Source: Entomortierella parvispora E1425
Lineage: Eukaryota; Fungi; Mortierellomycota
NCBI GenBank assembly: GCA_020891255.1
Contig: BQFW01000013.1
Location: 1,984,001-2,048,000, forward strand
Length of the DNA stretch: 64,000 nucleotides
Direction of reading: 5' to 3'
Below, piece by piece: positions 3,001 to 60,177 of the stretch. Under the pieces are notes generated by a model. The model was given only the letters and a program-made list of their open reading frames with translations, had not been told where the DNA came from and ran no database searches. Made by a program: the position numbers and the translations under genes. Each line of letters starts with the position of its first letter. Position 1 is the stretch's first letter.

Positions 3001-3562
3001 CGGTGTGTGATGTGAGGGAGGAAGAGCCATTGGGGAGGAGGATGGGGATGGGCAAGCATTCAGTGCGGAGGAGCTGGTGTCGCTTTTGAAAAGACGAACT
3101 GATAATATTACCTTCTGCACCACCATCAATCAGGATTCTGGCAGCGTGGCCATTGACAGAACCGATGAAAGTGAGCAGTTGGCTCTCTGCCTTTTGGACA
3201 GTGAATTCGTGTAGGCGAATCGCACGACGCTTCAACTTCTTCAACTGACTTTTGGACAGAGGTACACTAGGTGCCGGCGGTACAGCGAGAGGGTCCGGTT
3301 CATCTGTATCGGAGGATCTAGGTAGAGGAGCGGACAGGGCAACTGGAGCGGGCGAGGCAACAGGTTTTTTGGTTTGGTTTTGGTTTCGGTCCGATAGAAC
3401 AACCAGAGCATCGTGGATGTGAGTTCGCTTGTCATGATTGGAGTCATGTTTCTGAGGTGTAGAATCAAGTGAAGTTTTATTTGAGGTACTTAGCTCAGGG
3501 TTGTTGGCTACAGTTTCGACAACTGGGGTCCGGACCGACCCTAGTTGCCGGAGGCTTTTCCC
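1..3562 (-). pseudogene. pol: A1 pol (PR-RT-RNaseH-IN, partial), entered by -1 frameshift; 1-bp deletion near 1644
   Basis: ORF 917-3244 has ILIDGGAEG, LDLLSGYHQ and YLDDLL. Sequence reads aaaggtgagagatc versus aaaggtgaggagatc in A3, which shifts the frame at the start of RNaseH. Confidence 0.85.
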
Positions 3563-9385: not shown

Positions 9386-12300
9386 TTAAAAAATGATACC
9401 GTGCTGCTCTTTGAAGGTTGTGACCAAGTCCATGCAGTTGTCCAAGTTGCTTACTGGGAGCCATTCGTCAGCTTCTCTGCCGTAGCCTTTGAATGACACT
9501 AGGAACTGGTGTTGTCTGCGGTAGAAGCGGTACTTTAAAATTTCGTCCACTTCATACTCCTCTTCGCCGTCAATTACAGTGGGATCCACGGGGGCAGGAG
9601 CTCGAATGCCGAGTGACTCCGGGGACGGCAAATAGGGTCGAAAGGTATCAACGTGGAAGACGTCATGGATTTTGTAGAATGGTGGCAGCTCGACGCGGAA
9701 GGTGACAGGTGAGTGTTGCTCCAAAAGTGTGAACGGGCCAAGGAATTGAGGTCGAAGTTTATCGGCTGGTCTGATACTGTCGGCAGGGATGGTGATATTG
9801 GTGGCACGCAGCAGGACCTTATCGCCAACCTTGTACTTGTGATCCCGTCGTCGCTTGTTTGCCTGTTGCTCCTGATGATCCTGAGCACGCTGCAGAGCAT
9901 CCTGGGCCAGGGCAAGGGTGGTCGCCTGCTCAGTCAGGAAGGTATCGACAGTGGGGACTGAGCTGCTGGGTTTACCGAGGAGAGCGGTGGGGAGACGAGG
10001 GTGCTGGCCAGAGTTGAGGAAGAACGGCGAGTATCCCGTGGATGCATTGACAGCGTTGTTATAGGCGAATTCCAGTGACGGAAGGAGCTGGTCCCAGTTA
10101 GACTGCTTGTTGTCAATAAACGCTCTCAACATAGTCTTCAGCGTCTTGTTCATAACCTCTGTCTGCCCATCCGTCTGTGGGTGGTAGGCGGTTGACAGTG
10201 CAAGTTTGACATCCATTAGCCTGTGCAACTCTTGCCAGAATCTACTAGTGAATCGAGTGTCGCGGTCCGAGATGATGGATGTTGGTGTGCCATGCAGCTT
10301 AAAGATGTTGTCAAAAAACTGGTGGGCGACGTCGACGGCTGTGGCAGAGGTAGTACTGGGGACGAAGTGAGCTTGCTTGGTCAGCTTGTCGACAAACACT
10401 GTGATGGCGTCAAAATTTCTAGCTGTGGGCGGAAGAGGGCCGATGAAGTCCATGGTGACTACCTCCCAACGTTGCGAAGGAATGGGTAGCGGTTGCAAGA
10501 GTCCAGCTGGTCGATCCTGTGAGTCCTTGTTCCTTTGACACTTCTCGCAGGTTGCTACATACTGCTGGGTATCCTTGGCGATGTGGGGCCAATATACGAA
10601 ACGGCGCAGGTTGTCGTAAGTCTTTTGAAAACCAAAGTGTCCAGCAGTGGCAGAGTCGTGAGCGTCGTGCAAGAGAGTGAGGCGGATCGGGGAGTGCCGA
10701 GGGATGGCCAGGGTGGTTGCTCCACGTCGGGTAAAGTAGAGGAGGTTGTTCTGGAATGAATATCCATTGGCAACCTTCCCATCCAGGCAATCCTTGTAGA
10801 TGGGTCCAAGTCGAGGATCGTCGTTGTAGTCCTGGACAAGCTGGTCACGGACGTCCGGGGACAGGGAGACGCTGAGGTTGTATAGCTCAACAGGGTCAGG
10901 CTCGCGGTAGTCCGGTCGTCGGGAGAGAGCGTCTGGGACGATGTTGTCAACTCCTCGCTTGTACTTGAAGTCAAAGTCGTATTCCTGAAGCAACTCCATC
11001 CAGCGAGCCTGTCGACGAGTGAGTTTGGGCTGTGTGGGGAAGTGGCGGAGGGTGGCGTGGTCGGTGTGGACGCTGAACTTGGTTCCATCGAGGTAGTAGC
11101 GCCAAGTGCGGAGCGCATGGATGACAGCCAACAGTTCCTGCTCATGGACAGGGTAGTTCCGCTCAGCTGACTGCATTTTCCTGGAAGTGAATGCGATGGG
11201 ATGGGTATTCCCTTCCCGGTCAGTCTGCAGCAGCACTGCACCGATGGCGAAACCGGATGCATCTGTTTCGACAAAGGTGAGGAGATCAGGGTCGAAGATG
11301 CGGAGGACGGGGGCGGAGCAGATGGCGCGTTTGAGCTGAAGGAATGCAGATTGTTGTTCGTCGGTCCATTTGAAGGGAGTGTTGTTGGCGAGGAGGGAAG
11401 AGAGAGGGAGGGCAATCCCTGCAAAGCCCGATACGTACTGTTGATAAAATTGCGCAAGCCCCAAAAATTGCTGGACGTCCTTTGTGCTCTTGGGGGTGGG
11501 CCAGTCACTGATGGCTTTGCTGAGCCCGGCCGATGTTTTGATCCCGTCCTTGGTGATGGTGTGGCCCAAAAATTCAGTTTCGTCTTGCATGAAGGAGCAC
11601 TTGCTCAATTTCGCGTACAGACCATTCTTGCGGAGGAGAGCCAGGACGCTTCGGAGATGCTGCAGGTGTTCTTTCTTTGTCTTGGAGTAGATCAACAGAT
11701 CGTCGAGATACACGACAACCCATTTGTCCAAGACTGGATCGAGTACTCGCAACATCATATTGGAGAACGAAGCAGGAGCGTTAGTAAGGCCAAAGGGAAC
11801 AACATTGAACTCAAAGTGACCATAGCGACAACGGAAGGCAGTCTTGTGTGTGTGTGGTTCAAAGATACGCTGCTGATGATAACCGGATAACAAGTCCAAC
11901 TTGGAGTAATAGCGTGCTCCACGGAAGCGGTCAAGTAGCTCGTCGATACGGGGCAACGGGTGTCTGTTCTTCCTGGTGATCTTGTTGAGGCCACGGTAGT
12001 CGACGCACATTCGGAGTGTGCCGTCCTTCTTCCGCACAAAGAGCACGGGGGCGCCATAGGGAGAGGTACTGGGTTTGATAAAACCTGCTGCTAGCAATTG
12101 GTCCAGTTGTTTGCGAAGTTCGTCAAGCTCGGCGATTGAAAGTCTAATGACAGGGCGGAAGGGTGGGTCGGCTGTCGGGTCGGTCTCGATCTTCATAGCA
12201 TCACCACGGTCTAGGGGCAGGCCGTCCGGGAGTTTCTCCGGAAAGACATCAGCGAACTCTTCCATGACAATGGACCGCACCTCTGGGGTCATATCGGGAA

Positions 12301-13108
12301 TTGTACGCGGTTGGTCAGTTTCTTCAGAGGGCTCTGGGGTGTTGCGAATAAGGGCCAGGAACACCTCCGAGCCGGGCAGGGTTGCCATGGAATGAAAGTG
12401 CATGTGTGTGAGGAGGAGTCCTTTGGTGCGGCTTTGGATGTGATCGGCCTTGAAGCCGCGGCAGCTCCATTTGACATCGATTCCATTGTGAGTGAAATGA
12501 AGATCGTTGGTGCGCCAATTGATGCAAGGGTTAACTTTGGTGAGCCAGGGTTTGCCAAGGATGAGGTCGTATTTGTTGAGAGGATAGAGAATAGGGTTGA
12601 GCGAATCGGAGTAGTCGCTGCGGTTGAGGGTGATGGGGACGGTGTGTGATGTGAGGGAGGAAGAGCCATTGGGGAGGAGGATGGGGATGGGCAAGCATTC
12701 AGTGCGGAGGAGCTGGTGTCGCTTTTGAAAAGACGAACTGATAATATTACCTTCTGCACCACCATCAATCAGGATTCTGGCAGCGTGGCCATTGACAGAA
12801 CCGATGAAAGTGAGCAGTTGGCTCTCTGCCTTTTGGACAGTGAATTCGTGTAGGCGAATCGCACGACGCTTCAACTTCTTCAACTGACTTTTTGGACAGA
12901 GGTACACTAGGTGCCGGCGGTACAGCGAGAGGGTCCGGTTCATCTGTATCGGAGGATCTAGGTAGAGGAGCGGACAGGGCAACTGGAGCGGGCGAGGCAA
13001 CAGGTTTTTTGGTTTGGTTTTGGTTTCGGTCCGATAGAACAACCAGAGCATCGTGGATGTGAGTTCGCTTGTCATGATTGGAGTCATGTTTCTGAGGTGT
13101 AGAATCAA
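9386..13108 (-). CDS. pol: A3 Pol (PR, RT, RNaseH, IN with HHCC/DDE/GPY-F, chromodomain); the ORF-track N-terminus is probably not the real junction
   Basis: 1240-aa ORF with DGG protease motif, YLDD, TDASG, HDAH...CEKC and EEYEVDEIL...VSFKGY...EW. Confidence 0.92.
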   Translation of the reverse strand: MILHLRNMTPIMTSELTSTMLWLFYRTETKTKPKNLLPRPLQLPCPLLYLDPPIQMNRTLSLYRRHLVYLCPKSQLKKLKRRAIRLHEFTVQKAESQLLTFIGSVNGHAARILIDGGAEGNIISSSFQKRHQLLRTECLPIPILLPNGSSSLTSHTVPITLNRSDYSDSLNPILYPLNKYDLILGKPWLTKVNPCINWRTNDLHFTHNGIDVKWSCRGFKADHIQSRTKGLLLTHMHFHSMATLPGSEVFLALIRNTPEPSEETDQPRTIPDMTPEVRSIVMEEFADVFPEKLPDGLPLDRGDAMKIETDPTADPPFRPVIRLSIAELDELRKQLDQLLAAGFIKPSTSPYGAPVLFVRKKDGTLRMCVDYRGLNKITRKNRHPLPRIDELLDRFRGARYYSKLDLLSGYHQQRIFEPHTHKTAFRCRYGHFEFNVVPFGLTNAPASFSNMMLRVLDPVLDKWVVVYLDDLLIYSKTKKEHLQHLRSVLALLRKNGLYAKLSKCSFMQDETEFLGHTITKDGIKTSAGLSKAISDWPTPKSTKDVQQFLGLAQFYQQYVSGFAGIALPLSSLLANNTPFKWTDEQQSAFLQLKRAICSAPVLRIFDPDLLTFVETDASGFAIGAVLLQTDREGNTHPIAFTSRKMQSAERNYPVHEQELLAVIHALRTWRYYLDGTKFSVHTDHATLRHFPTQPKLTRRQARWMELLQEYDFDFKYKRGVDNIVPDALSRRPDYREPDPVELYNLSVSLSPDVRDQLVQDYNDDPRLGPIYKDCLDGKVANGYSFQNNLLYFTRRGATTLAIPRHSPIRLTLLHDAHDSATAGHFGFQKTYDNLRRFVYWPHIAKDTQQYVATCEKCQRNKDSQDRPAGLLQPLPIPSQRWEVVTMDFIGPLPPTARNFDAITVFVDKLTKQAHFVPSTTSATAVDVAHQFFDNIFKLHGTPTSIISDRDTRFTSRFWQELHRLMDVKLALSTAYHPQTDGQTEVMNKTLKTMLRAFIDNKQSNWDQLLPSLEFAYNNAVNASTGYSPFFLNSGQHPRLPTALLGKPSSSVPTVDTFLTEQATTLALAQDALQRAQDHQEQQANKRRRDHKYKVGDKVLLRATNITIPADSIRPADKLRPQFLGPFTLLEQHSPVTFRVELPPFYKIHDVFHVDTFRPYLPSPESLGIRAPAPVDPTVIDGEEEYEVDEILKYRFYRRQHQFLVSFKGYGREADEWLPVSNLDNCMDLVTTFKEQHGIIF

Positions 13109-41809: not shown

Positions 41810-43096
41810 CTATCTGGAGCTGTCTTCCTCGTTGTCATGGCCACATCCCTGTTTTTCGTGTCTCTTCAATTTGTCCAAACGGCCAAAGCGCTCACCACAT
41901 TGGCCACAGCTATATCGGCCAACCTCCTCGTGAACATTTCTAACATGGCGAACATAATCTGTACGACGTTTGAAAGGACGTCCACACACCCCACACAAGA
42001 ATGCAGGCACCTTCAAGTGGCACCGGGAATGCGACGCAAGCTCACCCTTTGTTGGGAAAGCCTTGTCACACTCTTGGCAAGGGAAACGACGAGGCACAGC
42101 GTCACTGCTAGACCTGCGCTCAACCGATTTGTTGGCTTTGGAAATGGTGGGCAACGTTCGTGAGCGGGTAGCCGAAGGGCGCTTAGGGCGGGTAGCTGAA
42201 TGGATGGACTCTGGAGCCTGGTCTCTGTAAATCGATGGAACACTTGCTGCATAGTGGTTATCTGTGGTATAAAGGGGTGTCGCTGGGGGTGTTGGAGAGT
42301 AGGGTTGTTGTGGCTCAGAAGCGCCGTAAGAAGACGAATAAGAATTGCTTGCATAGGGGCCATGGCGTTCGACACCAAATGGTGTCGACATGTATTGTTG
42401 TCCATAGTAGTCGGCCGATGGCGAGTTTGAGAAAGCGTAGGAGTGACCCATCATATTGCCCTCAGGGCGTTGTTGAGGGTATGAGGGGAAATCAGGCGAT
42501 GCACCGCCGGATGGGTCGGGGCTCTGATTACTGTTGTAGTCGTAATAGTAGTGCTGTCCGGGATGGCCTTGAGCAGGTCCAGCACTATATTCAACCTGAT
42601 TCATCGATCGGCCATGTCCTGCATGTTTGAAGCCGTGTTCGTGGTTATCAGTGTAGTACTGAGGCACATGGTAGGGGTATGGCATCGTCTCTCCCAAGAT
42701 CATACCGGGGTGGCTGACACCCTGGAGCGGCGTCATAGTGGCCAGAGTGGATGTCATACCAACGGGAACGGGCGAACCTGGCAACGGTGTTCTCGGAGAG
42801 AGTGATGCTACAGGCGACACAGGGAAGGTAGAGACCTGTACAGAGTCCAGGGGACTGCCGAAAGGCTGAGGCGCCTGAGAATGCTCTTGGAAAGAGTGGT
42901 TCCGGTGCTGGTGCTGGTACTGGTGCACATTGTCCGAGGAGGCGTTGTTGAGAATCCCTTTGAGCCGCATCCTGTCCTCGGGCTTTGGAGCAATGGCACT
43001 GTCTGTTCCGTACATAACCGCGGAATCAGAGTGGAGCTGCAAGGAGTCCGAGCCGAGGGGCGAGGGCGTGAACATGGATGTCTCGTAAGAGGGCAT
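41810..43096 (-). CDS. C2H2 zinc-finger transcription factor, 428 aa, intronless
   Basis: Three C-terminal fingers (CQECDKAF...HSRCH; CGVCGRPF...HVRNVH; CGQCGERF...HEKQGC) after a low-complexity P/S/Y/Q region. Confidence 0.92.
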   Translation of the reverse strand: MPSYETSMFTPSPLGSDSLQLHSDSAVMYGTDSAIAPKPEDRMRLKGILNNASSDNVHQYQHQHRNHSFQEHSQAPQPFGSPLDSVQVSTFPVSPVASLSPRTPLPGSPVPVGMTSTLATMTPLQGVSHPGMILGETMPYPYHVPQYYTDNHEHGFKHAGHGRSMNQVEYSAGPAQGHPGQHYYYDYNSNQSPDPSGGASPDFPSYPQQRPEGNMMGHSYAFSNSPSADYYGQQYMSTPFGVERHGPYASNSYSSSYGASEPQQPYSPTPPATPLYTTDNHYAASVPSIYRDQAPESIHSATRPKRPSATRSRTLPTISKANKSVERRSSSDAVPRRFPCQECDKAFPTKGELASHSRCHLKVPAFLCGVCGRPFKRRTDYVRHVRNVHEEVGRYSCGQCGERFGRLDKLKRHEKQGCGHDNEEDSSR

Positions 43097-44025: not shown

Positions 44026-47000
44026 TTAGCTGGGCCATTCTTTCACCTTCGTGAACACAAGATAACAGGCCTAGAGTGACAGGAAAAGAGCGGACGGCAT
44101 GGCAAAGATGTGTAAGTTCACATATCTCAAAATAGATAGTAGACCAAGGCACCAATAACGATGAGAGCTCTTACATGGACAATGGGCAGATGTGTCGAGG
44201 GAATTTCGTCGTCAGGGATGCATGTTTCTTCCTGGAAGTCTGACCATGTCGCTACCTTGCGCCGGTCTTTTTGGTACCCATCCGGCACCGCTTCAACTGC
44301 ATGTTCAAAGAATTGCCATTGGTTAGTCGTTATTTTTGAAGGTAGAGCTTAAAGAAAACAACCATTCAACTCGTCAACACTCACTCAGCTCTTTTAGTTT
44401 CAAGCACTCAGCAACCACTCGAGTAATGTCCTCCATAACAAGCATGCTAAGCGGAATTAGTTTTCCTGTCTCAGTTCGAAAGTCCTGGGCGCCTACAACC
44501 AGAACTCCTGCCATGGGCAATTCTTGAGCGGCGCGAACACTGATGTGCATGATGGAGGTCCTGTAGGCTGTGATCTGATGTGTCCGAAGGGCGGAGCATG
44601 GAATGTGGGCAATTAGCCGCAGAGTTGTTGCGGCTGGTGCTGGGAAGATTGGCGAATCTTTTGCAATTTTGATCTGATGGCCAATGTCGTCCGATTTTTC
44701 TCCAAGATCAGTTATAAGTCCCTTGAAAAGGAAAAAAAAAAAAGAATAAAATGAAGTGAGTTGCGCTATTTCAATTTCCAATTTAGCTGGACACATGTCC
44801 GTCGGAGAACCATTCAAGCAATACCAAAGCCAGGAGCATCCTATTATTCTCCTGGATCTTTTGAAGTCGATCGCGTTCATACGTCACCATGCCATCTTCT
44901 TCTGGAGGCAAAACCTCTATGAAATAAGGAAAACATGAGTTAAATTCAATTGCCTGAATAGAGGGTACTATGTTGAACAAAGAGATCACTTGCCTACTGG
45001 TTGCTCATGCCAAAGATCAGCCAAAGGTTCCTCAGGATTATCAAGCAAGAATTGTAGCTTGAACTCTTTCCAATTGGTTTCATTCTTGCCGAATCGTTCA
45101 ACCTAAATCAAAAAATCAAATTTCGTCTTCAAGCTTTAGTCTCCAATGCAAAACCACACATCACTACGGCGTTTGCTCCATCAAGCAGCTTACCATCCTT
45201 GATGCACAGAGTGTCGGGAAATCAAACTCTTCTGTAGGCTTGAATGTCCATACCGAGCCCATCACAACGCTTTTTCTTTCAATAGGGCAACTTGGTGTCG
45301 CGCGCAAAATATTGGAAATCTGGACGTGCTCAAGGACAGAGTAATCTTGAGGCAGAGAGAGTCAGTGTATAATCACCAGAACCCATCCTAGCCAGAACCT
45401 TATCCTAGTTTTCACGGACATTCAGCATTACCTGGATCCAAGATCATTGTGTCGTGCCCCTCCTTAGGAACCTTGCGCAGTGTTGCAATAAATTCGTGTG
45501 TGAAGCACAAAAAGTCGAACTGAACACAAAGGTAGGTGCCCAAACCAAACATGGCACAGTAGCGCTGCCGCTTCACAATCAGCTCCTCGAGTTCGAATCC
45601 TTCATTAATATATTGCCGGATCATCTGGAAGCTCACCGGGACGTAAAAGCAGTGTTCACGGTTATCGCCGATACCAAGAGTGCATCTGCGCCCCATTTTC
45701 AAAACCCTGTAAGTTTCGCGCACAACGTGACTCATCTCGCGCTGAAAATCGGCTGAATTTCCAAATCGTGAAAGATCGCCTACAGATAGAGGAATACTTC
45801 ATCAGTTGGAGGTATGGAAACCAGGTAGTATCTCTGCCTCGAAAAACATACCATCAATATGCGTGGAATAAGTGACACAGTCCTTGTAAGGTGGGTGTGA
45901 AAGGACATGGTCAAAACTCTCATTTGAAAACATTGGCCCTTGAAGCCGCCTTGCATCCCCTTGAAGTATCATGGGGCGATGCTCTGCTTTTATCGATCCG
46001 TCTTGCGGTATAGCAAATGAGCAGTTTCGAATTGATAGTGTGATTGCAGTCTAGAGGACAGGTTACTATTATTAGTAGAGGTCGAGCAGAGAGAAGTCAA
46101 GAGCCTACGAATGTAGCCGAATATTGTGAGTTCCTTACAGGGTTGATGTCCACTGCAGTACACCTAAGCAATTCAATTGAACCATACGAGAGATAATTAG
46201 TTTCTACAGCCTCAATTATGCTGGACCATCACCCCTACGTTGTCTTCTCTCACCTTCGCCCAAGCAAAAAGCATTCAATCGCATCTGTTCCTCGACCAAG
46301 AAAGTTTGATAATATCCTGGCGTTAGGTCTTGTGAATCGAGTAACAGCTCTATATGATAATTCATCCAAAATAAGTATTGCCAGGTCTATGTTACTGATC
46401 TCATATCGAGGGGAGAATGCCTCTCTAATACCTTCTCACAGTCTGAGGGAGCCATGTTCCATGATAATCAGTCCCTGAATGGGTTGCCCCTAATAATGAG
46501 ATCAAATGAAAAAATGACAGAGTTGAGTGGATGGCACCAAGGAGCAAAAAAAAAAAAAAAAAACTCCGCAGATCCTACAGCGAGGAGCTCGACCAGGAAT
46601 GTCATAGTAGGTGGTGTCGATAGGCAGAGAGTATAGCTGGTTTTCAGCAGGCCCATAAGAGTCAAGGTAGACAGCCTGCGAGGACGAATGATCGAAGCGA
46701 ACGGATGAAACTGCAGTTCGGGTTAGGTACGGCGTGTGTGAGTAGTCTTCTGCGGAAGTGGCATAGTGATCTCTGCCTTCCTGAACATCAAGGTAGGTCT
46801 CTGCTACCAGACTACCCGCCACGAGTTCGGCGTCATCGCCTTGATACTCCGTGGACTGTTCCTGGCCCTGAGAATCAATTTCCAAAGTCGATTTTGGCTG
46901 GAGAGGCTGAGATCCATTCACAGGGCCTGCAAGGAAACAGTCTTCGCACATCAGCACGCCTTGGTATCCTGTCTCAAGAAAAAGCAAAGAGTGGTGCGCG

Positions 47001-50000
47001 AGATATCAATATTGGCATAGCGCAGGAAGATGCGTATTTTCAGAATGCTATCTTTTGTTCTGTTATCTGCCTCTGAGATTGCCTTACCCTTTCTCCATGT
47101 CGATGAGGTTGATGACCAGCAATAAGAGCACACTCTTCTAGCGAGACTGCGCATCTTCGGCTTGTAACTAACCCTTTTCTTCGTAGCCGCATCTTCATCC
47201 TTTAAGCTAGCTTTTGAAGCTTCTTCCGCTATTTGCTCGTTACGGATCATTTCCAAGGCTAGAATGGGACAGTGCAGAAGTTTGTCAGTCTTTTCAGACT
47301 CTTTTGTTTGCGCCTGCTATCACACAGCAGAGACTATCAGGTAATAAAATCATACATGTGATCTTGAACTCATCCTTGCTGTGCTCATGCCCTCCCGTGT
47401 CTTTCGCAAAACACTATGACAGGTAGTAGACATTTTTTTAAAGATTTCAGAAGTGTAAGGTTAGTAATCGATCCAGCAGTGAGCGCCTGTAGTAGAATAT
47501 CTTACCTCTCGACAGAGATCAAATGTATGAAAATAGTCGGAGCTGCATTTGATGCAAGTATGCCAGGGGTACACACCAAGAATTTTAGAGCATTGATCGC
47601 AACTGAAGGTTTCATCATATGCATCTTTGGATTGAAGTCAAAGAGTGAGGTTAGACTGTAGTTCATTCGCAGCAGGTTCGTAAACCACATAACCATACCT
47701 CTTTGATGCAGAGCCTTCTCATGCTGCGGGCACCAAAAAATGACACCATCTTCGAAGTGAGTCATGGGTTTGCCTGTGCACGGCACATGGAAACTTCGGA
47801 AGCATTTTGGATCAAAGCAACCAATTGTGGCGCCTTTCTCTCTACAAACCGAGCATTTCTAGTAGTAGAAGAAGGAGGGTTAATTAAGATATTAGTGCGG
47901 GCTTTGTTTTTGCCAGCAACATGGATTTGACACGAAGAACACCAACCACAGTTCGTCCTCGCCGCATCGCCGTCGTGACATTATACCAAGTCCCATCCTT
48001 AGCTTGTATCACTTCAGGAGAGTATCGCGCACAATTGTTATGGGCCCAGAACGATCTTCTCTTTGTCTCTCCGTATCGGTTAGTGGAGGACATCAAAAAT
48101 GGTAAAGGCCCAAGGAAGCTGTCCTTGTCTGTGCCTTCGTCGTTACAGAAAACACATATCTTCTTGGTCTTCAATCTTTCTGACATCAGGTATCCTTGAT
48201 CACTCTCTAAGCCTAGCCAGTCGCCTGCCCAATTTTCAGTTCCTGTATCCGAGATGGCGGGTTTTAGTGGTGATGGCGCGGTGTATGTCTGGTCTAATAG
48301 GTCTTTTTCAAAGCGCGTGATAATCCCTCCCTTAACAGGATGGACACCATGGGGTCCCACAATGACCTTGGTAGCAAAAGACGATCGGGGATGATCATGG
48401 TGTTCCGGAAATGCATTTGAGAAACACCATAGACAAAGATTGAAAGGTTGACCCTCAGGTCCCGCCGACTTGCACTCAGCTTCACAGTACATGCAGTAGA
48501 TCCTATTGTTTTTGCAAAGGAGCTACTTTAGTTAATGAATAATGGACGGAGAATTGCAAGTAGTCAAAGTGAAGCACGGCTTACCTGAACTGACTGATTT
48601 TGACCCGGCATTGAACACAATTGACCTCCACTGATGCTTCCTCCGCCGGGACTCCATCGACAAGATCCATCATCTCCGCAGCAGATGCAGACTGATTCTC
48701 AACAACCTCACTATTATCAGGGGGTGTAGTGGTAATCGTATCTGGAGTTTCCTCGTATTTGTCGGCTGTTTGATCCATCAACGACACACTTTCCTGGATC
48801 CCAAGATCCACCATATTTTGGGTGGCCTCTGTACTCACAGTATCATCTTTGGCTGCACTGCTAGTCTGAGCCGTAGGGTCTGGTTGCTCCAAAGTGGGAT
48901 CGAACTGAAGCCGTTCACTGTTGATGTCAATCCACTCATTATAGACGGCATGGTATCCTTCGTAATGAACGAGCACTCGACTGTTCCTGACGTCCTCAAT
49001 CAAAGCCGTTAGCCATTCCAGCTGCTTATCACGAGCTCGGATTCTTGTTCCAGGGACCATTGTTTGTCTAAGAAAAGTGATATGGTCATCAACAGGAACG
49101 CGCTTTTTGATATTGGATCGCGTGAGGCTCCGAAGACTTTGAAAAGTGCCATCCTTGATTTCCTGCTCCTGCTGAGATTTATGAAGTTCTAGCATCGTCT
49201 TGACTAACCGACGTTCTTTCATTAATTTCGCCAGTTTCCTCTGCTTTTGTTTCGCCTTTTTAATGTCCACAGATTCCTCAGTCTTCACGACTGGCTTCGT
49301 TGACTCGATGTAACCAGCCTCGTTGAACAGGAGGTCAGATGCACCTTCTCCTGATATTCCAAGGATCCGTGACGACAGTGAGCCTGGCCGGCCAACGCTT
49401 GGTTTGCGAGCTGAGAGAACCTTGGTAGCTCTGGATTTGCTCCGCTCGGAACTATTGTTGAGAGCATCCCGACGATCTTCCTCGTTGTAAATGACTTGCC
49501 GAACAAATTGCATCATTGGAGTGTGGCACATATTACGCACTGCAAACAGTCGGATTTCTCGAATTCGTTCCAGGTATTCTTCTGACACTGGTTTTGGTTC
49601 CACAGGAGTAGGGTCTGCCATTCCGCGAGTAACAAGTGCTTCCTGTCGAGCTTCCAAAATCGCCACAAATTTTTCTTTGGTTTTCAACCGTTTGTTAGAG
49701 TCATCCTCTTGCTCTACGCCGTCCTTATTCTCAGTTCCAGGCTTTTTGCTGGTTCGTAATACTTCCTCAGGCGGTTCCTCCACTACCTTATTTACAATAA
49801 GTCCAGTGTCTAAGACTCGAAGAAGAATCTTGCGGATTTCTGATTCCTCGTCCTCATATGTGTACTGCACAATCTCAAATGGTGGAAGGCCGAGGTGAAT
49901 AGGGTACCCTAGAGTGGTTTCGACCACAGCCTTTTCAATGGGAGGGGACTTCTCAAGTGAGTCAGCAGAGGGGGTTTCTTCCTCAGTGTCCACATCGATA

Positions 50001-51572
50001 TCAAGTGAATCCCTGTCGCCATTCTGCCCCATTGAAGATAACGAGGACGATGTCTCTGAGATATCATTGCTGCTTAGTGTGGACTCAGACGATGCCTCGC
50101 TTGGCTGTCGTTTCATGACGGTCGGGTTATCGTTTACCAAATCGATTTTACGACGTTTCCCACTATCTTCCAGCGAGGTCTGTCCTGCAGTATGAGATAC
50201 GTATAGCTCAGACACAAGTGCATCTGTGTTTTGAGAAGGCTGTTTGCGCTTTGATGTCGTAGAGGGGACCTTCGATTTTCCTTTTGGTGATGGCGTGCTG
50301 ATATTTGCTACATCTGAACCTGCCGATGTCATTGGCAGCTTGTCTTCGGGTGATGAAGAGGACATAAGTCCCAAATTTCTCATGGCAGCCTTTCTTCCCT
50401 CCATCTCTGATTTGGTCAGCAGTTTCAACTTTGGACTACTTAAAGCGATCCACTCATCCATTTGGGCATCCCATCCATCAATATGAACCTTGATCTTGTC
50501 ATTGTCCTGTGCCATCATAGATCCAATGCGCCATGTGCCATCCATATGTTGCAGCTTCACTGGACGGCCCAATGTGTATCCAATTTTTTTTTTTTTCGAC
50601 CCGATGACTGCTGGACTTTCAATTGCTTTCAAAGTTGTCGCAGTCGTAGCAGTAGCAGTAATGGTCGGACATGGGGCTATGGTGCGAAAACCAGCGCCAG
50701 GTTTCCTCGTTATCTGGGTGTCGTTCGTGGATATCGTGATATCTCCTGCACCCGTAGCAGGGTTATTTTTGGTTATTTTTGATTTTTTGTCCTGATTTTT
50801 TGCGGCCAAGGCAGAAGGGAAAATAGAGTGGAACTGGGAAGGGACTCCTTTTGCCGCCTTTGAGGCAATTGTTTTGGTTGCTATTACAGACAGACAATCG
50901 ACGATTAGAGTCCTGGATACTGTCATTTTCAAAACGATTCCTGATTGGAATTCTTTTACCCTTTGTCGGTCGATTTCCAGGCTGACAAGCGATGCTGGAC
51001 AGCACTCTAGGCAAGTCCACGGTGGTTTTACTGCCTTCGCCGATTTTCTCCTGTTGGAGACAACTGTCTACAGCAAGGCTGTCGGATGGCGATGTCGTTT
51101 CTGTGAGGGGCTTTTGTACGTCTACTAGTGCCTGTTCCTGTTCTTGGGGCATATCTGAATGCAAGGGCACAGCAACTATTAGAGCATTAGGACATCATTG
51201 CGCTGATACGTGCCTAAATTATTGGCTTTCTAGTAAAAAACACCTACCAGACGCGACGTTGGCGCTCAAGTCTGGTGCCTCATTGTCAAGTGGAGATTTT
51301 TTGTACGCGTCATGCACACGTCCAGAATTATGCTGACCCTGTCTTCTGCTGCTGGCAACGCCACGCATAAGCCGATGGCAGCCTGCGCACACGCTCAGAA
51401 GACCAAGCTTGAGGATTTTTACGTCTGTGGCACTGCAGGACTCACATGCTTCCTTTATAGGCGTGCAATTGATGTCTAAAGTGCTGTGTTGGTCCAAAGA
51501 GGATATCTTGGGAGGTCGGCCTCGGCCACGCTTAGTTGGGGTAAGAGCCCGAGCATTGGCCATGGCTGACAT
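44026..51572 (-). CDS. Chromatin-reader-fused amino-(N6-adenine/N4-cytosine) methyltransferase, 20 exons, ~1957 aa
   Basis: Exons 51572-51248, 51175-50960, 50880-48585, 48502-47947, 47858-47699, 47624-47506, 47413-47356, 47258-47088, 46968-46579, 46489-46432, 46349-46254, 46163-46139, 46050-45852, 45779-45432, 45345-45194, 45102-44994, 44916-44825, 44721-44385, 44296-44175, 44070-44026. Phases are all consistent (5874 nt). Motifs: GRGRP AT-hook, two Tudor/chromo-barrels, ZZ, ePHD, ZZ, GATA CX2CX17CX2C, ILSNFLGRGT, AVDINP, GDAR and FDHVLSHPPY. Confidence 0.85.
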
Positions 51573-52882: not shown

Positions 52883-55287
52883 ATGTCAGCAGCTGGACCC
52901 TCGCAAATGAAGACGACAACGTCAGGCCGTGCGTTCGCAAAGGTAAGATAGAGCATTTTTTTTTTTGAAGAAAGATAGATATGACCGAGAAAGCGGTACG
53001 GAACAGGGACGCAACTCTGACCCTGAGTCGTTTTTTTGCCCTCCATCACAGAACATCTTTGACCTCTTTGCGACTTTGATGATATCGCTCCCAATTGAGA
53101 CGCACAGGAGCATGTTCAAGAGTTATCCAAACTCGTTCACCGCAGAAGAGGCTATTAAAAACCTGCGAGGACTGCAGTTCATTCAGGCCCACAAGGAGAG
53201 CGACCCAAAGGACCCGACCAGAATCATTACCCGAACTGTCACCACTCAGTTTTCACTTTCTCCAGACATGGCCAAGAATTTGTGTCAGACATTCATGGAC
53301 GCCCGATTGTGCGAATGTGCCACTGATCCTAGCAAACGAGAATTCCAGTCCAAAGGCGTGTATCAGGTCACTGGGAAGGGTGCTCACATTGCCGAGAAAT
53401 TTGTGCATCGAAACTCTTTGTCGGTGGAGGCGACTCGGCACATCACATCGAATGCGACACCAAGGATCTTGTTCCTGGAGAGGGCCGATGACGAAGACAC
53501 GATTGTTCTGAACCAAAAGGCGGTCGATGCCATCTTTAAGCGCTTTGCTGGACTTCGACCCAACACCGTCGCCGCAACGTCCTCGGCGGGTTCACCGGGC
53601 GGAGACGGTATGGCATCGAGCCCGAAGCGAGACCGTATTCAAATTAATGCTGATCGCTGCAATGGAATTGAGGTGAAAGACCAGCAGCACAACTATGATG
53701 TGTACAGGCATACGTTTTACGGAAAGGCCGCTGTCGAATGGTTGCTGGATTATACGACGGTTATCAGCAAAGAAGAGGCGATCAGGATAGCACAGGAGAT
53801 GGTTTCATCAAGGTATATTGAGCAAGTTGGAGAGGAGTTAGGACCAGGACCATCTTTGTTCAGGAGCGGGAGCTCTGCATTGTACCACTTTACTGAACTC
53901 GGGCGGGTGGTCGTCGGATGGGAAACTTTTGTTCGGAGTCGAGGAAGCAGTGTCAATACGGATTGGATGGACGGTAAGAGATCTCCCCCTTTTGATGATC
54001 TGTCTATTGTTAAATTGTTTCATGCTAAAGAACTGCCCGTGTTGTTTGGTCGTAGAGAGATCACCATTGGGACCTAGACTGGATAAGCACCACCACGAGA
54101 TACACCCCTTGTCAACTCAATTCAAGCTGACCTCCAGCACACTCCCACGACTCCCTATCTCTGTCGCGATGGAAAAGAGGAGGTCGTCCGAGGAGTCGTC
54201 GCTCCACAATGGGTCCTCCTCTCAGTACCCCACAGATGATACTCTGAGTCAGTCCAGCAGGCGGCTCTCTCAAATCCTCAATGACCCCGCGTTGCAATTC
54301 TCGCTCTCTGATTCCCAGTCCAACTATGCACCCTCTTCCTCCGGAAAAGACTCTGTCGGCCATCGAGAGAGTCATTCTACAGGGGGTGGCATCACCTCCT
54401 CTTCCGGTTCAACTTCGTCCTCTCAGGTGACCACCTCGGCACGACTCAAGTTGATCCTGTCCAACCTGACTCTGCGCGAGATGTTCAAAAACTTTTTGAA
54501 GCAAAACATTTGTGAGGAAAACTTGTCGTTCTACCTGGAGGTGTTGGATTACAAGAGTCGCTTCAACACCTTGATCCATTCCAGTCGACTATACGCTCAA
54601 TCCTTGGCACTCCTTGCCGGGCAACAAGAGGCCGCAGATGCTGCACAAGCCTCAGGGGCTACCCCCTCTTCCGCTTCTTCTTCCTCCTCCTCCACAGGGG
54701 GACCTTCGGGGGCAGCAGTCTCCTCCTCTCAATCGACACCTCATCCGGCCAGCCTGCGTGAACTCGAAAAACAGATCTGCACACAGGCATTCGCCATCCA
54801 CGAGACTTATTTGGTCTCGGGTGCTCCCAAGGAGCTCAACCTGCCACATCAGATGCGCCAAGATATCACCTCTTATATGCAGGCGGTCGTCAGGAACATG
54901 GAAACTCCAATAGCGGACCCTTCTTCATCGCTGGCCGAAGGAAACTCGTTAGCAACCCATCCCCAGAATGCTTCTCTTGACGAAGAGTCATCTAAGAATG
55001 AGAGCAGTGATGCAGGTGCCGTGGGTGGAGTGGTTGGGGTAGCAAGCGGAAGCAGTAGTGGTAGTGGTAGTGGTAGTGGTAGTGGTAGCGGTAACAGTCC
55101 ATCATCAGGACCTAGAGAGTTGATCCACATCTCGCTTTTTGACAGAATCCATGAGCATGTCTTCAGGCTGATGTCGACGGACTCTGTGCCCAAGTTTATT
55201 CGAACAGACAAGTACCGGGAGGTGATGATGAACAAGATTAAGCAACAACAGCAACAGCAACAACAGCAACAACAACGACAACAGCAA

Positions 55288-55337
<50 letters not shown>

Positions 55338-55569
55338 GCAGCAACAGCAATTACAACAGCAGCTACAGCTACAGCAAAAAGAACTCCACCAACAAGAACA
55401 AGAACACCAAGAGCGACAACAGCAGTTGCAACATGGATATAACGGCAGTAGCAACAGCAGCAACAGCACCTTGGGAAACACCCTGGCGTGCGCGACAACT
55501 CCAGTCCATAGCCACAAAGATTCCAGTGGATTGTCAACTAGAGGACCAGCCCCACCTGCCGTGGCATAA
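52883..55569 (+). CDS. RGS protein with DEP domains (Sst2/FlbA-like): join(52883-52942,53052-53973,54056-55569), ~831 aa
   Basis: DEP motif HTFYGKAAVEWLLD. RGS motifs LREMFKNFLKQNICEENLSFYLEV, ELNLPH and VFRLMSTDSVPKFI. GT-AG introns are in phase. Confidence 0.9.
55242..55380 (+). repeat. CAA/CAG trinucleotide tract (polyQ) in the RGS C-terminus
   Basis: About 45 Q-rich codons. Confidence 0.95.
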
Positions 55570-55686: not shown

Positions 55687-58600
55687 TTATTGAGTTTCTA
55701 CTGGAGCAGCTTCGACAGCTGCTCTTTCATTTACGACTTGCTGCTCTTTGATGTTACATTCCAGGCACTCGATGTATATTTGGTACTTGACCATCTCTTT
55801 GAGAAGGTACCTAGACCGCCGCTCCCAATTATTAAATGCTTTTGCGTAGTTGTGGGATTTTGGTAGGAACTGTAGTGACAAAGCGAAAATGAAGTCAGTG
55901 TGTTTGTGACAAAAATAAAAATAAAACAAAAGAAAGGATGTGCCTGCCTTACCAGTGCTGTCATAGGTACTCTGTACGCTTGGTGGATCTCCATTTCGGA
56001 CTCAAGCCCGGCCCCGTAACGTTTCAATGCTTCACATTGCTCCGTTTCGCTAAGTGTTGCCATGCTCATCGTAGGCAGTGGTGGGGACCATTCAAAGAGC
56101 ATCACTCGATCTCCAAGAGGAACCGAGCTGAAAGAGCCAGAGCCACCGTACTTAGAGGATGTGGTCGATTTGATGGACGATGACCGACCACTACCAATTC
56201 CTGAGTTGCCATAGGGGTACGGAGACGAAGATGTCATGGAGCCAGAGGAGGTCATCGGTGTACTTGTTCCTGTTGCACTCAGAGGTGGGGATTGCATAAC
56301 AGGAGGGTGGTTCAAATAGTTGGTTCCTGTATTGAGAGAATTGTTTGTCCGGATCGAACGATCGTCGCCATCATCTTCCGACACTGCTGAAGATGTAGTG
56401 GTAGGTACAGTGTCCACTGTATCTGATGTTATGTTTAAATTGCTTCCGCTACCGTTGACACTGGAGTTAAGGACAGAGGTGGAAGAGCCACTGGACTGAA
56501 GGTGAGAGAGCTGGAGCCCAGCGTGCTGTTGTTGTTGCTGCTGTTGTTGCTGCTGTTGTTGCTGCTGTTGTTGCTGCTGTTGCTGGTTGGCCAACATGTC
56601 TAATGACCGACCCCATCCGTAATCCATGTTGATGACTCCGCCAGATAACGGCTCCTTGGATGTTCGCGCAGCCCAGTAGTTGCATGTACGAGCCCACTCT
56701 TCACATTCTTTCGCAGTCGAGGTTTGGAACAAAAAGACAGCGCCTGTGTACAGCTGAATCGCAAAGACATGTCGCCTTGATGCAGAGTATCCAGGTGGAG
56801 GCAAGATGTTTGTGATGGTGTGTTGCAGTCGAATCTCATCAAAGAGAATCCCCTGTTCCTCGAAAGCCTGGCCCATTTGCCCATCTGCTCTAAACATGGA
56901 CAGTCCTGCTTGATCCAAGACAACCAAAAGCTGCCTCCAGGCCCGGTGGGGCGCCTTCTTGTCTGCCCGCTCTAAAAGGTGCTTTCGGAAGAGAATACCT
57001 TCCATCCTATGCATGGGTTGAAGTTCACCCTGGAGTTCATTTTGAAAGTCGCTGGTTGTCTGCTGCGTAGGTTGACCAGTCTGAGAGCCTGCTGTCAGTG
57101 TCCTAGATGTGGGAGATCCATGAGTCTGTCCATGAGAAGGTACGAAAGTAGAGTGGCGATGACTGAGATGCTGTTCGGATTCTTTCCCAGCACCACCGCG
57201 GCTGTTCGACACTGAGCTGGCACTTGTTGCAGCAACACTAAACCGGTGGCTGGCATGTCCCTTCGTTTGACCATCTGCTGCTTGTGCCGTAAGTCGCTGC
57301 ATGGCGTCGAGTCTGAGCTGTTTTGTCCTAGCATTGATAGAATTACGCCGGACCATACTAATCTTGGGTGTCACAGAGTTGAGATTGGTGATCATGCCGC
57401 CCGCGCCAATTTGGTATCCCGCATCGGTCAGTGCAGTGGGCTGCACCTGTCTTGATAGCCTAGGCAAGAAGCCCCCAGACTTTGAAGGACTAGGCAGTCC
57501 GCTCAAATGGACACCAGAGCCAGTGTGAGGAAGTATAGACACTGAAGGCGAATGCTGGGAGTGTGAATGAGCATATCGTTGTTGTTGCTGAAAAGCTGAT
57601 GAGGTAGGGAGGAGAATCTGGTTGTGCTTCACGGTAGAATAAATGTCTTTGAGTAACGACTCTAGCTCACTGATCCAGAATCTGCCGTTGCCATGTCCAC
57701 CGTTCGCCTTTGGATCTGTACCCATCTTGGACGATTTGCCCTGGAAGGAGGTACCGGATTTCCAGCTTTTGACACTCGGTGTCCTCTTTTTGGTTGCAGG
57801 CGACCCTTGACCGTTCGACAGATTGGACCCCAAAAGAGAGCCGTTGATGCTGTTCTCTCCTGTCATTGTCCTAGTCAAAGTCAATCCATGTCCAGACGAA
57901 TCCTCTGATGGTCGGGGATCCAATTGGTATTGGGTCTGGGCTTGTACAACCTGCAAAGTATTCTTGACAAAGGCACTTCTCGACATTTTGCTGGAGCTGG
58001 ACTGTTGCACCACATGAAGATCCGTGTTGAGAAGTAGAATCGAGTACGCGATTGCGTGAACAACATCTTTCGAACCGAATATCGATTCTGGGTTACACTC
58101 AACAAATCGTTGTGCAAACGCCTCCAAGATTCTATCCACTTCCTGCGTTTCTCCCTTGAGAATGAGTTTGTGGCAAAGCTGACGGAAAGCTTGGTCTAGC
58201 CTTCGTCCTGAAAAATCAAAGTGAGTCATGTAAAATGCCAGTACCCGTCGGTTGAATGGCTTTGCAGTCCCGAGGTAGACGGAAATATCTTCCCGCTTCA
58301 TAAAAGTGTCGTCCTCCTTGAAACAGCGTACTGCAGTTTGGGATGCGAGGGTATCTGCGGTTTCTCGTTGCGCCGCGGGAGATAGATCTGCCCCAACACT
58401 TGGTTCCGTTGTGATCGGATTTGACAGCTTGGATGCTTCTTCTCCACTGATACATATTGTTGCGGGTCGTACTCCTGCCATAGGCGATCCAGGGACGGCG
58501 AGAGATCGCATACCAATAAGGAGGGTTTCCAAGCTATCAACAGCTGGCTGAGGGGTTGTGGTTGTGTCCTCCATTGCACTGGGCGCCAGCTTCCCAGGGC

Positions 58601-60177
58601 CTAGGTCGAGGTTTCCTGATTCCTGATCGCCTGCGATCACGGATGTAGAAGAGCCGATAGGAAGGAACATTGAGACAGGTCTCCGTGGCAAGGGCTTATC
58701 CAGTTCCGGGTCGTCACTCAAAGGGGTTGTGATAGAAAGAGGTGCCAGAGGAAGATCTTTTGCAGATATGATGCCGTATTCTGAAAACCTGATCGAGTTC
58801 CGTGCGTGGTTGCCAAAGCTGTTTCCTGATATTGATTTGGAGCCCGCGTCAGCTTCGTCGGAGAGAGTCGACTGTGCAGAGCAATAAAGAGACGCCTGAG
58901 ACTGGTTGAGATGCTGCTGCATCGACTCAGCCTCATAGATTCTCGAGATGCGGTTTGCACTAATGGCCTGAACTGCCAAAGGGAGACTTTCCTCTTCCTC
59001 TTCATCTTCAGATCCGTCGTCTATGGCCGAGATTGCGGAGTTTTGAGAGGGGCGTCTTTGTTGATATGGAGTGGAGAAGGTCGATCCAGTAGAAGTGGCA
59101 GGCGTATGTACCTCTGTTGTACTTTGCGAAAATGAGTTGTGACTGATGGAGGCTGTCGTAATTGGGGAGTCGTTATCGTTCCGTTCTTTTTTAGAGACAT
59201 CATGGGCCAGCCATGGTTCAACTTTGCTTGTATTTTCGGACGACTCTGCCCCCAGATCCTGATGAGGACTAGAGTTGTGCCGATCACTAGTGGATCTGAT
59301 TAAAATATAAGCGCAGGTCGTAAGCAACTCGTCAACTGGCACGCTGTGAGCAGCAAGCGGAGCTGACCTATTTGCTTACCTCTGTGCATCCAGGGGACCA
59401 ATGCCGTGAGCGTGTATCGGAGCTGGCAAAGTTGGGAGGCCCGGTAAGGCTAAAACGTCAATGGAGGATGTCGAGGGAGCGTGCACACTCCGAGGCTTAC
59501 TGCTGCTGTTATTAGTTGTTGTTGTGTTGGTTGTAGGCATCGCTGGTATTGGGGGCGCATCCTTGTCATCAAAGTTCTGAAGGTAGTAAAAAAATAAAGC
59601 GCGTTAGAAACTTCTCGTCATGAGAAGCAGCAGGGCACGCGATGCAGACTCTTGTTTTACCTTGACGAGTTTTCGCAAAAAGTTGCTGCTACTTTTGCGG
59701 ACAATCCTGGAGATGTTGCCAGCAGTTGTCTACCAATCCACCAAGCAAGCGTCAGTCAGAGGGTCAGCGTGTCAGTCAAAGGACACAGTAGTGACTTCTT
59801 ACCTTTAGTCCACTGATGCTCTCGCTGCGTTTGCGTCGTTGTTGAAAAGATAGACCATTCAGATTGAGTGCGGATCCATCTGCGTTATGAGCTGAGGAAG
59901 CAAGGCTCGGTACCGCGGATGCAGAATTGTGACTAGGTAAAGCTGGGGCTGCCAAAAACTCTGTGCTCTTGTTAATGTTTCCAAGGTTGGGAGTGCTTGC
60001 AGCGGATTTAGAGCCACCCCAGAGGCCAAAGGAGCTGCGATGGCTGTTGTTTGAGGCAGGCGGCTTGAGGCTTGAGGTGGTGGCTGTAGCTGAAGAGTCG
60101 TCGAGGATGGAGGAGGTTGTAGGGAAGACGATGGTGGACTGGCGTCTGCGGTGAGACTGTGATTGGGACGCGGACAT
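55687..60177 (-). CDS. Sec7-PH ARF guanine-nucleotide exchange factor (EFA6/PSD, Yel1/Syt1-like): join(60177-59803,59576-59380,59295-55953,55869-55687), ~1365 aa
   Basis: Sec7 motif FRQLCHKLILKGETQEVDRILEAFAQRF. PH domain RMEGILFRKH...WRQLLVVL...EWARTCNYWAAR. C-terminal NWERRSRYLL. Introns are in phase. Confidence 0.9.
56524..56586 (-). repeat. polyQ tract in the Sec7-PH protein
   Basis: CAG/CAA run, about 20 Q. Confidence 0.9.

Follow-up and report, generated by a model that had tools for sequence, protein, structure and literature searches.

A hidden 20-exon gene of Entomortierella parvispora encodes a predicted chromatin-reading amino-methyltransferase with an HPPY motif

The 64,000-nucleotide (nt) window analysed here (Entomortierella parvispora E1425, contig BQFW01000013.1, positions 1,984,001 to 2,048,000 of the forward strand) contains a 20-exon gene on its minus strand, at window positions 44026-51572, in which a predicted bacterial-type amino-methyltransferase with an HPPY motif and a degenerate copy of its own fold is joined to seven chromatin- and DNA-reader modules. 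Judged on its sequence, the gene is real, intact and selectively constrained, and more than a product of chance. We take it to be the Mortierellomycota orthologue of the "Group-1 clade 4" N6A-methyltransferases (Iyer, Zhang and Aravind, BioEssays 2016, PMC4738411), whose architecture was therefore already known in silico. With a rough probability of 0.6, we consider that the enzyme acts on DNA, double- or single-stranded.

Splicing of the gene and its reader modules

An initial annotation of this DNA had proposed a hidden 20-exon gene with a single hand-spliced frame of 5874 nt, and we spliced the gene independently of it. The predicted splice model comprises 20 exons and 19 GT..AG introns of 72-119 nt, and the resulting coding sequence of 5847 nt, or 1948 amino acids (aa), runs from an ATG at 51572 to a TAA at 44028-44026 with no internal stop. 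The longest minus-strand open reading frame (ORF) within 44026-51572 is 783 aa, and no other long one occurs there. In translated searches (tblastn), five Mortierellomycota proteins matched exons 3-20 in order, with block ends that coincided with splice sites, and residues 496-1945 of the spliced protein formed a single BLASTP block 62-64% identical to Mortierellomycota orthologues. We also compared the model with genomic contigs of relatives. In a related strain (X3, 95-99% alike), all eight listed indels fell inside predicted introns 4, 7, 10 and 13. In X4, a more distant relative, third codon positions accounted for 38 of the 40 substitutions listed for exons 14, 15 and 17, and the introns between these exons were diverged or replaced, the hallmark of a coding gene that has the exon structure proposed and evolves under purifying selection. 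Long T runs at 46535-46572 (intron 9) and 44719-44760 (intron 17) were treated as repeats and skipped in the contig comparison.

The hidden 20-exon gene was thus borne out by our own splicing, the collinear tblastn matches, the single BLASTP block and the relatives' contigs, and the positions first given for three landmarks, the motif I exon (46349-46254), a 25-nt exon (46163-46139) and the SHPPY codons (45900-45886), proved exact. The uninterrupted frame also stood, at a length 27 nt shorter than originally stated. This difference must lie in the poorly conserved N-terminal part, where introns 1 and 2 lack orthologue support and many alternatives keep the frame. We picked the sites of these two introns by splice-site quality among dozens of frame-keeping GT..AG pairs, and both are weak calls.

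The window protein was scanned with Pfam exon by exon, and the domain and structure work used single exons together with orthologues up to 91% identical (P0171 and P0151). Exon 1 (51248-51572, aa 1-109) holds the start codon, an AT-hook with the sequence KRGRGRPPK (aa 14-22, 51533-51507; Pfam AT_hook 17.2 bits, below the cutoff of 17.4) and a cysteine cluster of the form C-x8-C-x2-C ... C-x2-C-H (aa 36-66, 51467-51375). A weak tblastn match of protein P0003 covers 51548-51321 of this exon, whose donor was chosen among several candidates. Exon 2 (50960-51154, aa 109-174) is of low complexity, and both of its boundaries, set by frame and splice-site quality only, are uncertain. Orthologue matches resume with exon 3 (48585-50880, aa 174-939), which encodes two Tudor/MBT-like barrels and the start of a first ZZ finger, ZZ-1. 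The barrels (aa 273-328, 50584-50417, and aa 781-833, 49060-48902) correspond to two stretches of one Pfam MBT match of 32.3 bits on the exon 3 frame.

Exon 4 (47947-48502, aa 939-1124; donor GTTGGT) completes ZZ-1 (aa 927-981, 48622-48376), in which C928, C931, C942, C945, C962, C965, H974 and H976 are conserved in at least 98% of orthologues, and encodes the first half of an extended PHD; its 65% identical tblastn block stops exactly at 47947. The second half lies on exon 5 (47699-47858, aa 1125-1178; tblastn block 85-89% identical), and the whole extended PHD (aa 1053-1171, 48162-47718) scored 37.5 bits against zf-HC5HC2H in orthologue P0171, with ligands at least 95% conserved. A second ZZ finger, ZZ-2 (aa 1184-1233, 47607-47366), begins on exon 6 (47506-47624, aa 1178-1217; tblastn 73-81%), whose ligands are at least 97% conserved, and ends on exon 7 (47356-47413, aa 1218-1237; matched by tblastn), where H1226 and H1228 are invariant. 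The GATA finger, CX2CX17CX2C (aa 1280-1304, 47130-46937; C1280, C1283, C1301 and C1304 at least 98% conserved), spans exons 8 and 9. Exon 8 (47088-47258, aa 1237-1294; matched by tblastn) encodes a basic linker and the first half of the finger, and exon 9 (46579-46968, aa 1294-1424; tblastn 57-62%) the second half, followed by a linker.

The series of upstream modules listed in the initial annotation (AT-hook, two Tudor/chromo-barrels, ZZ, extended PHD, ZZ and GATA) was borne out, and every expected zinc ligand of ZZ-1, the extended PHD, ZZ-2 and the GATA finger was kept in 95-100% of 100 orthologues. The zinc modules are invisible to Pfam in single exons because introns split several of them, and the ZZ and GATA matches in orthologues lie partly below cutoff, as for GATA in P0261 (24.4 bits, under the 26.8 cutoff). 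The cysteine cluster at aa 36-66, absent from that list, is weakly conserved and has no Pfam match; it is a candidate for the "DNMT3-like Zn finger" described by Iyer et al.

The tandem methyltransferase module and its origin

The methyltransferase domain (about aa 1416-1666) has the motif order X-I-II-III-IV and is spread over small exons. At its start, exon 10 (46432-46489, aa 1424-1443) carries the motif W-A-T-H..G..W.P, with 19 of 19 residues identical in five orthologues. Exon 11 (46254-46349, aa 1443-1475) encodes motif I, ILSNFLGRGT (46315-46286), the predicted binding loop for S-adenosylmethionine (SAM), and is followed by the 25-nt exon 12 (46139-46163, aa 1475-1483), which encodes motif II (..CTAVDINP). 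Motif III, GDAR (45966-45949), and motif IV, SHPPY (45900-45886), share exon 13 (45852-46050, aa 1484-1550), and exon 14 (45432-45779, aa 1550-1666) adds GDLS, RVLK.G and GDNR up to the end of the active domain. The motifs therefore follow each other as W-A-T-H..G..W.P, FLGRGT (I), DINP (II), GDAR (III), HPPY (IV), GDLS and GDNR, motif I occupying aa 1455-1464 and motif IV aa 1534-1538. This unpermuted order, I before IV, is the reverse of the beta-class order of the Pfam N6_N4_Mtase model (IV first, I last), and the two halves of that model, PF01555, match in swapped order in relatives, profile positions 121-220 first and then 2-147. Against a gathering cutoff of 26.7 bits, PF01555 scored 40-48 bits in fungal orthologues, including 40.0 bits in P0171, whose catalytic domain is 91% identical to that of the window; exon 14 of the window scored 14.5 bits by itself.

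Across an alignment of 37 members that spans fungi, holozoans, bacteria and archaea, all catalytic motifs were invariant or close to it. HPPY was the same in all 37, and the motif II Asp, the Gly-Asp of GDNR and the W, H, G and W of exon 10 were likewise invariant. Among the approximately 170 retrieved relatives listed with long matches, HPPY was present in all but three gappy ones. Splicing and motif conservation together upheld the earlier description of a bacterial-type amino-methyltransferase core scattered over small exons. The lesson for annotation is that small exons (25-58 nt) conceal catalytic motifs from ORF-based views.

Exon 15 (45194-45345, aa 1666-1716) starts a second, degenerate methyltransferase-like domain (aa 1667-1948), which continues through exon 16 (44998-45102, aa 1717-1751; matched by tblastn) into exon 17 (44825-44914, aa 1752-1781), where a KRI-like insert, YERDRLQKIQENNRMLLALGL (44881-44716), runs on into exon 18. 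The core of the domain lies on exon 18 (44385-44721, aa 1782-1894), and the gene closes with exon 19 (44175-44296, aa 1894-1934; matched by tblastn) and exon 20 (44026-44070, aa 1935-1948 plus the stop), where P0003 matches at 44070-44038 with 91% identity. Domain 2 lacks the glycine loop (GxGxG) and the PPY, and the window protein has LIAHIPC in the place of motif IV. Profile comparison nevertheless found domain 2 to be homologous to domain 1, both in the full alignment (hhalign probability 96.5%, E 7.9e-10) and among prokaryotic members alone (97.7%, E 1.4e-12). Since the homology also holds in prokaryotic members, the tandem of an active and a dead domain is judged to predate the transfer to eukaryotes. 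An insert in domain 2 occurs only in eukaryotes, where the domain has 276 columns versus 176 in prokaryotes. In the window protein it comprises YERDRLQKIQENNRMLLALGL and its flanks, and it is equated with the KRI domain of Iyer et al. solely on its position and motif. AlphaFold modelled the two-domain module confidently in the closest orthologue (P0171:1829-2361, which shares 81% identity with the window protein there), with a predicted local distance difference test score (pLDDT) of 86.5 and a predicted template modelling score (pTM) of 0.88.

A search of 1.84 billion protein representatives with exon 14 returned 281 relatives. The long ones (1300-2500 aa), nearly all labelled "hypothetical protein", came from Mortierellomycota, Mucoromycota (including Mucor lusitanicus, with orthologue MUCCIDRAFT_114945, and Rhizopus microsporus), Glomeromycota, Zoopagomycota (Coemansia, Basidiobolus, Massospora and Smittium) and chytrids. 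Orthologues were also present in two unicellular holozoans, Chromosphaera perkinsii (P0068) and Corallochytrium limacisporum (P0071), with both gene models drawn from one database; both carry the extended PHD and the HPPY methyltransferase, and P0071 additionally a ZZ finger. In a maximum-likelihood tree of the catalytic domain, built with 16 prokaryotic sequences and an assumed root, a branch with 100/100 support split prokaryotes from eukaryotes, and the window protein fell within a Mortierellomycota clade (100/99) inside the eukaryotes. The eukaryotic part follows the species tree, with Chromosphaera and Corallochytrium together, beyond the whole of the fungi, then chytrids, Zoopagomycota, and Glomero-, Mortierello- and Mucoromycota. 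These results suggest that the module was acquired and fused once, before fungi and holozoans parted, and that losses came later. The two holozoans are new here, and by this sampling the family is wider than "basal fungi only", as published in 2016.

Prokaryotic relatives number more than 3200, measure about 530 aa and are 56-69% identical across Chloroflexota, Acidobacteriota, bacteria of the candidate phyla radiation (CPR) and archaea. Also new here is that they already possess both domains and adjoin a conserved partner. In five of the seven prokaryotic loci examined, a protein of about 185 aa without a Pfam match is encoded just downstream of the methyltransferase, directly after the gene in three and behind a 63-66-aa ORF in two. 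Downstream partner proteins are encoded at L007:7880-8395, L008:7796-8350, L009:7596-8153 and L010:7554-8111, and in a sixth locus (L001:9614-10258) a 214-aa protein, only 22% identical, takes the partner position. The 185-aa protein is 76-98% identical across bacterial phyla and Archaeoglobaceae and has about 600 homologues, all unnamed. Other neighbours at the prokaryotic loci are unrelated housekeeping genes, and the methyltransferase with its partner looks like a mobile two-gene cassette. Searches for a nuclease identity of the partner gave no Pfam match and uninformative look-alikes, and its AlphaFold model, with a mean pLDDT of 54, was left unused; a restriction-modification reading of the prokaryotic ancestor is unproven. 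At one locus (L005:248-4388), a D12-class adenine methylase, a 364-aa protein with a faint NucS_C match and the HPPY methylase stand in a row, followed by ParB_N, Mrr_cat, SNF2, BglII-type and EVE-domain genes. We regard this locus as a defence island that resembles the two-methylase, DpnII-like layout. At L009, the relative lies directly after another N6_N4 methylase.

DNA, RNA or protein as the substrate

In the DNA reading that we prefer, the C-terminal 530 residues would have been acquired from prokaryotes as one ready-made module, in which an active Rossmann methyltransferase domain and its degenerate copy form in effect a built-in heterodimer. This module is expected to flip out a base and methylate an exocyclic amino group, the likeliest target being adenine N6 or cytosine N4 in double- or single-stranded DNA. 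The N-terminal 1300 residues would place the enzyme on chromatin, with the two Tudor/MBT-like barrels, the extended PHD and the two ZZ fingers reading histone tails, and the GATA finger and AT-hook binding DNA.

Profile searches with the family point in this direction. Pfam N6_N4_Mtase reached 106-111 bits in prokaryotic relatives, versus about 20 bits for the tRNA-type UPF0020, and the family profile found its best PDB match in TTHA0409 (E 1.8e-19), which carries the annotation of a putative modification methylase and aligned as two pieces in swapped order, the characteristic stretch after motif IV included; Thermococcus Trm11 came next (E 1.3e-11). Context also favours DNA, in that the fused modules are all chromatin or DNA binders and the relatives at L005 and L009 adjoin DNA methylases or nucleases. 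In the comparison with N6_N4_Mtase, MT-A70 and Trm11 that the initial annotation had put forward as a check, sequence profiles favoured DNA N6/N4 methylases and gave no MT-A70 match, but structures came closest to Trm11. The outcome that the annotation had named as refuting a DNA writer, a best structural match to tRNA m2G methylases with activity on RNA only, was thus observed in part.

That structural result is one of several observations that weigh against a DNA substrate. The best colinear structural matches of the AlphaFold model were tRNA guanine-N2 methylases (Trm11, 6zxv, Z 19.5; TrmN, 3tma, Z 19.1; 5e71, Z 18.2; Trm14, Z 17.8; Foldseek E 1.3e-10), and NCBIfam scores were similar for the Trm11-like TIGR01177 and for adenine DNA methylases. 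Most N6-methyladenine (6mA) of Mucor has been attributed to MetB and Mta1 (PMC11258239). Most prokaryotic loci show only the conserved 185-aa partner and no recognisable nuclease, and the literature searched yielded no biochemical or genetic datum for any family member. It likewise yielded no characterised precedent for His as the first residue of motif IV, a search for HPPY returning unrelated uses only, and because of this the modified atom is unreadable from the motif; His is listed as an allowed first residue in the motif [DNSH]PP[YFW] of Iyer et al. (PMC4738411). To the structural lead of the tRNA enzymes we give limited weight, because aligners that keep to sequence order cannot match the permuted DNA methylases from end to end. 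The lead itself is small; generic class I methylases (Z 16-17) trail the tRNA enzymes by 1-3 Z units.

These same matches make RNA the strongest competing substrate. An enzyme of DNA-type ancestry would in this case have been redirected to RNA, as other eukaryotic amino-methyltransferases were, and, tethered to chromatin, would act for instance on nascent transcripts or R-loops, at guanine N2 or adenine N6. Beyond the structural matches and the Thermococcus Trm11 hit, the Trm11-family model TIGR01177 matches colinearly (E 1.6e-10), and repeated shifts of such enzymes to RNA were noted by Iyer et al. (PMC4738411). We nevertheless consider RNA methylation unlikely, given that scans of the family proteins revealed neither THUMP nor any other RNA-binding domain, that the fused domains all bind chromatin or DNA, that N6_N4_Mtase far outscores UPF0020, and that the small structural lead of Trm11 is expected. 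A protein substrate is much less probable again. Here an amide or amino group, for instance of a histone, would be methylated and the readers would bind the enzyme's own substrate, as in the HemK branch of the superfamily. The [DNSH]PP[YFW] clade includes glutamine methylases (PMC4738411), PrmA and PrmC are among the weak matches and the protein is rich in histone-tail readers; however, DNA and tRNA enzymes match far better than protein methylases do, and two of the seven examined prokaryotic relatives adjoin DNA methylases or nucleases. We give least credit to the view that the protein is a scaffold devoid of catalysis whose sole role is to read chromatin. In its favour one can cite the missing activity datum, the His in place of the usual Asp, Asn or Ser in motif IV and the clearly dead state of one of the two methyltransferase-like domains. 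Against it, the SAM loop, the motif II acidic residue and HPPY are invariant from archaea to fungi, which is hard to explain without catalysis.

Methylation of DNA is a plausible, unproven function. A more specific proposal, which we hold to be conceivable with the odds against it, is that in early-diverging fungi and unicellular holozoans the HPPY enzyme writes an unrecognised DNA mark, guided by histone marks through its Tudor, PHD and ZZ modules. Candidates for this mark are N4-methylcytosine (4mC) and 6mA laid on DNA that is single-stranded or in R-loops. It would then represent a third pathway beside MTA1c and MetB, one that predates the fungus-animal split. Early-diverging fungi are a main model for eukaryotic adenine methylation, and the present family, predicted in 2016, is a third bacterial-type amino-methyltransferase with intact catalytic motifs, found from chytrids to Mucorales and in two holozoans. 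Should it prove active on DNA, the system would gain a histone-guided writer that might account for methylation of a residual or strand-specific kind; activity on RNA or protein would make it an unusual modifier tethered to chromatin. The unvarying HPPY and the built-in dead partner domain make it a distinct enzymological case.

Genomic surroundings and known systems

The window from position 1 to about 37 kb holds several copies of a Ty3/Gypsy chromovirus, including a 1240-aa ORF on the minus strand (9386-13108) with protease, reverse transcriptase, RNase H, integrase and chromodomain matches. A repeated 347-aa ORF without Pfam matches occurs in this island at 3541, 13181, 24806 and 28536. 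Between the island and the methyltransferase gene, on the downstream side of the latter, lies a C2H2 zinc-finger ORF (41810-43096). On the upstream side are an RGS-domain ORF (53929-55569), whose start is overlapped by an ORF at 52965-54077, and a Sec7-PH ORF (55731-59342). The C2H2, RGS and Sec7-PH ORFs look ordinary. As for the initial suggestion that the enzyme may mark repeats such as this adjacent island, the island is real, but nothing beyond proximity links it to the enzyme and the C2H2 gene intervenes; the transposon link is speculation.

The closest described system is Group-1 clade 4, which was reported from basal fungi only, was predicted to act on single-stranded DNA by analogy with DpnA, and includes, besides the active methyltransferase domain, an inactive one at the C-terminus that bears a KRI insert (PMC4738411). 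Mortierella, Rhizophagus and Rhizopus are among the species abbreviated in the figure legends of that study. The window gene shares with clade 4 the unpermuted catalytic domain, the [DNSH]PP[YFW] motif after strand 4 (here HPPY) and the second inactive domain with its insert, and the chromo-type barrel, ZZ, PHD, GATA and AT-hook fusions are all found in the window gene or its orthologues; nothing essential differs. A special link of clade 4 to DpnA was not reproduced by our profile search, in which the chains deposited as DpnA (5hek and 5hfj) matched motif I only (E 2.8e-9 and 1.1e-8), at best on a par with MboIIA or N4C methylases; one prokaryotic locus, L005, does show the D12 methylase, the 364-aa protein and the HPPY methylase in a row. 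We found no experimental study of the clade 4 family in the literature searched, and two recent primary papers make no mention of it. The Mucor study tested metA, metB, metC and mta1, and not the orthologue of the window gene (PMC11258239), and a 2026 review of fungal DNA methylation names only MTA1c and MetB as 6mA writers (PMC13297926).

The resemblance to MetB that the initial annotation had suggested was rejected on family grounds. The asymmetric 6mA writer MetB of Mucor lusitanicus is likewise a bacterial-derived amino-methyltransferase kept in early-diverging fungi, but it belongs to N6_Mtase (PF02384) and has an MmeI-like target domain (PMC11258239). None of the 16 family proteins scanned matched PF02384; the family matches PF01555, and the correct precedent is Group-1 clade 4.

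MTA1c, formed by the MT-A70 proteins Mta1 and Mta9, also pairs an active with an inactive methyltransferase fold. It differs in belonging to the unrelated MT-A70 family, in its DPPW motif and in being made of two polypeptides, whereas the window gene pairs both folds in one chain; no family protein scanned matched MT-A70 (PF05063). The tRNA N2-methylguanosine methylases Trm11, TrmN and Trm14 share the motif order and are the best colinear structural match, but they carry the THUMP RNA-binding domain that is absent from the scanned proteins of the window family. Their motif IV is DPPY, not HPPY.

By analogy, the best functional model is N4CMT of bdelloid rotifers, in which a bacterial N6_N4-type methylase is likewise fused to a methyl-lysine reader, and which has been shown to write the bacterial-type mark 4mC on eukaryotic chromatin (PMC8885841). 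N4CMT has the permuted beta-class order, an SPPY motif and a single C-terminal chromodomain, and is recent and restricted to bdelloids, whereas the enzyme encoded in the window belongs to an ancient family and joins the order I to IV and the HPPY motif to seven reader modules and, in tandem, a dead domain.

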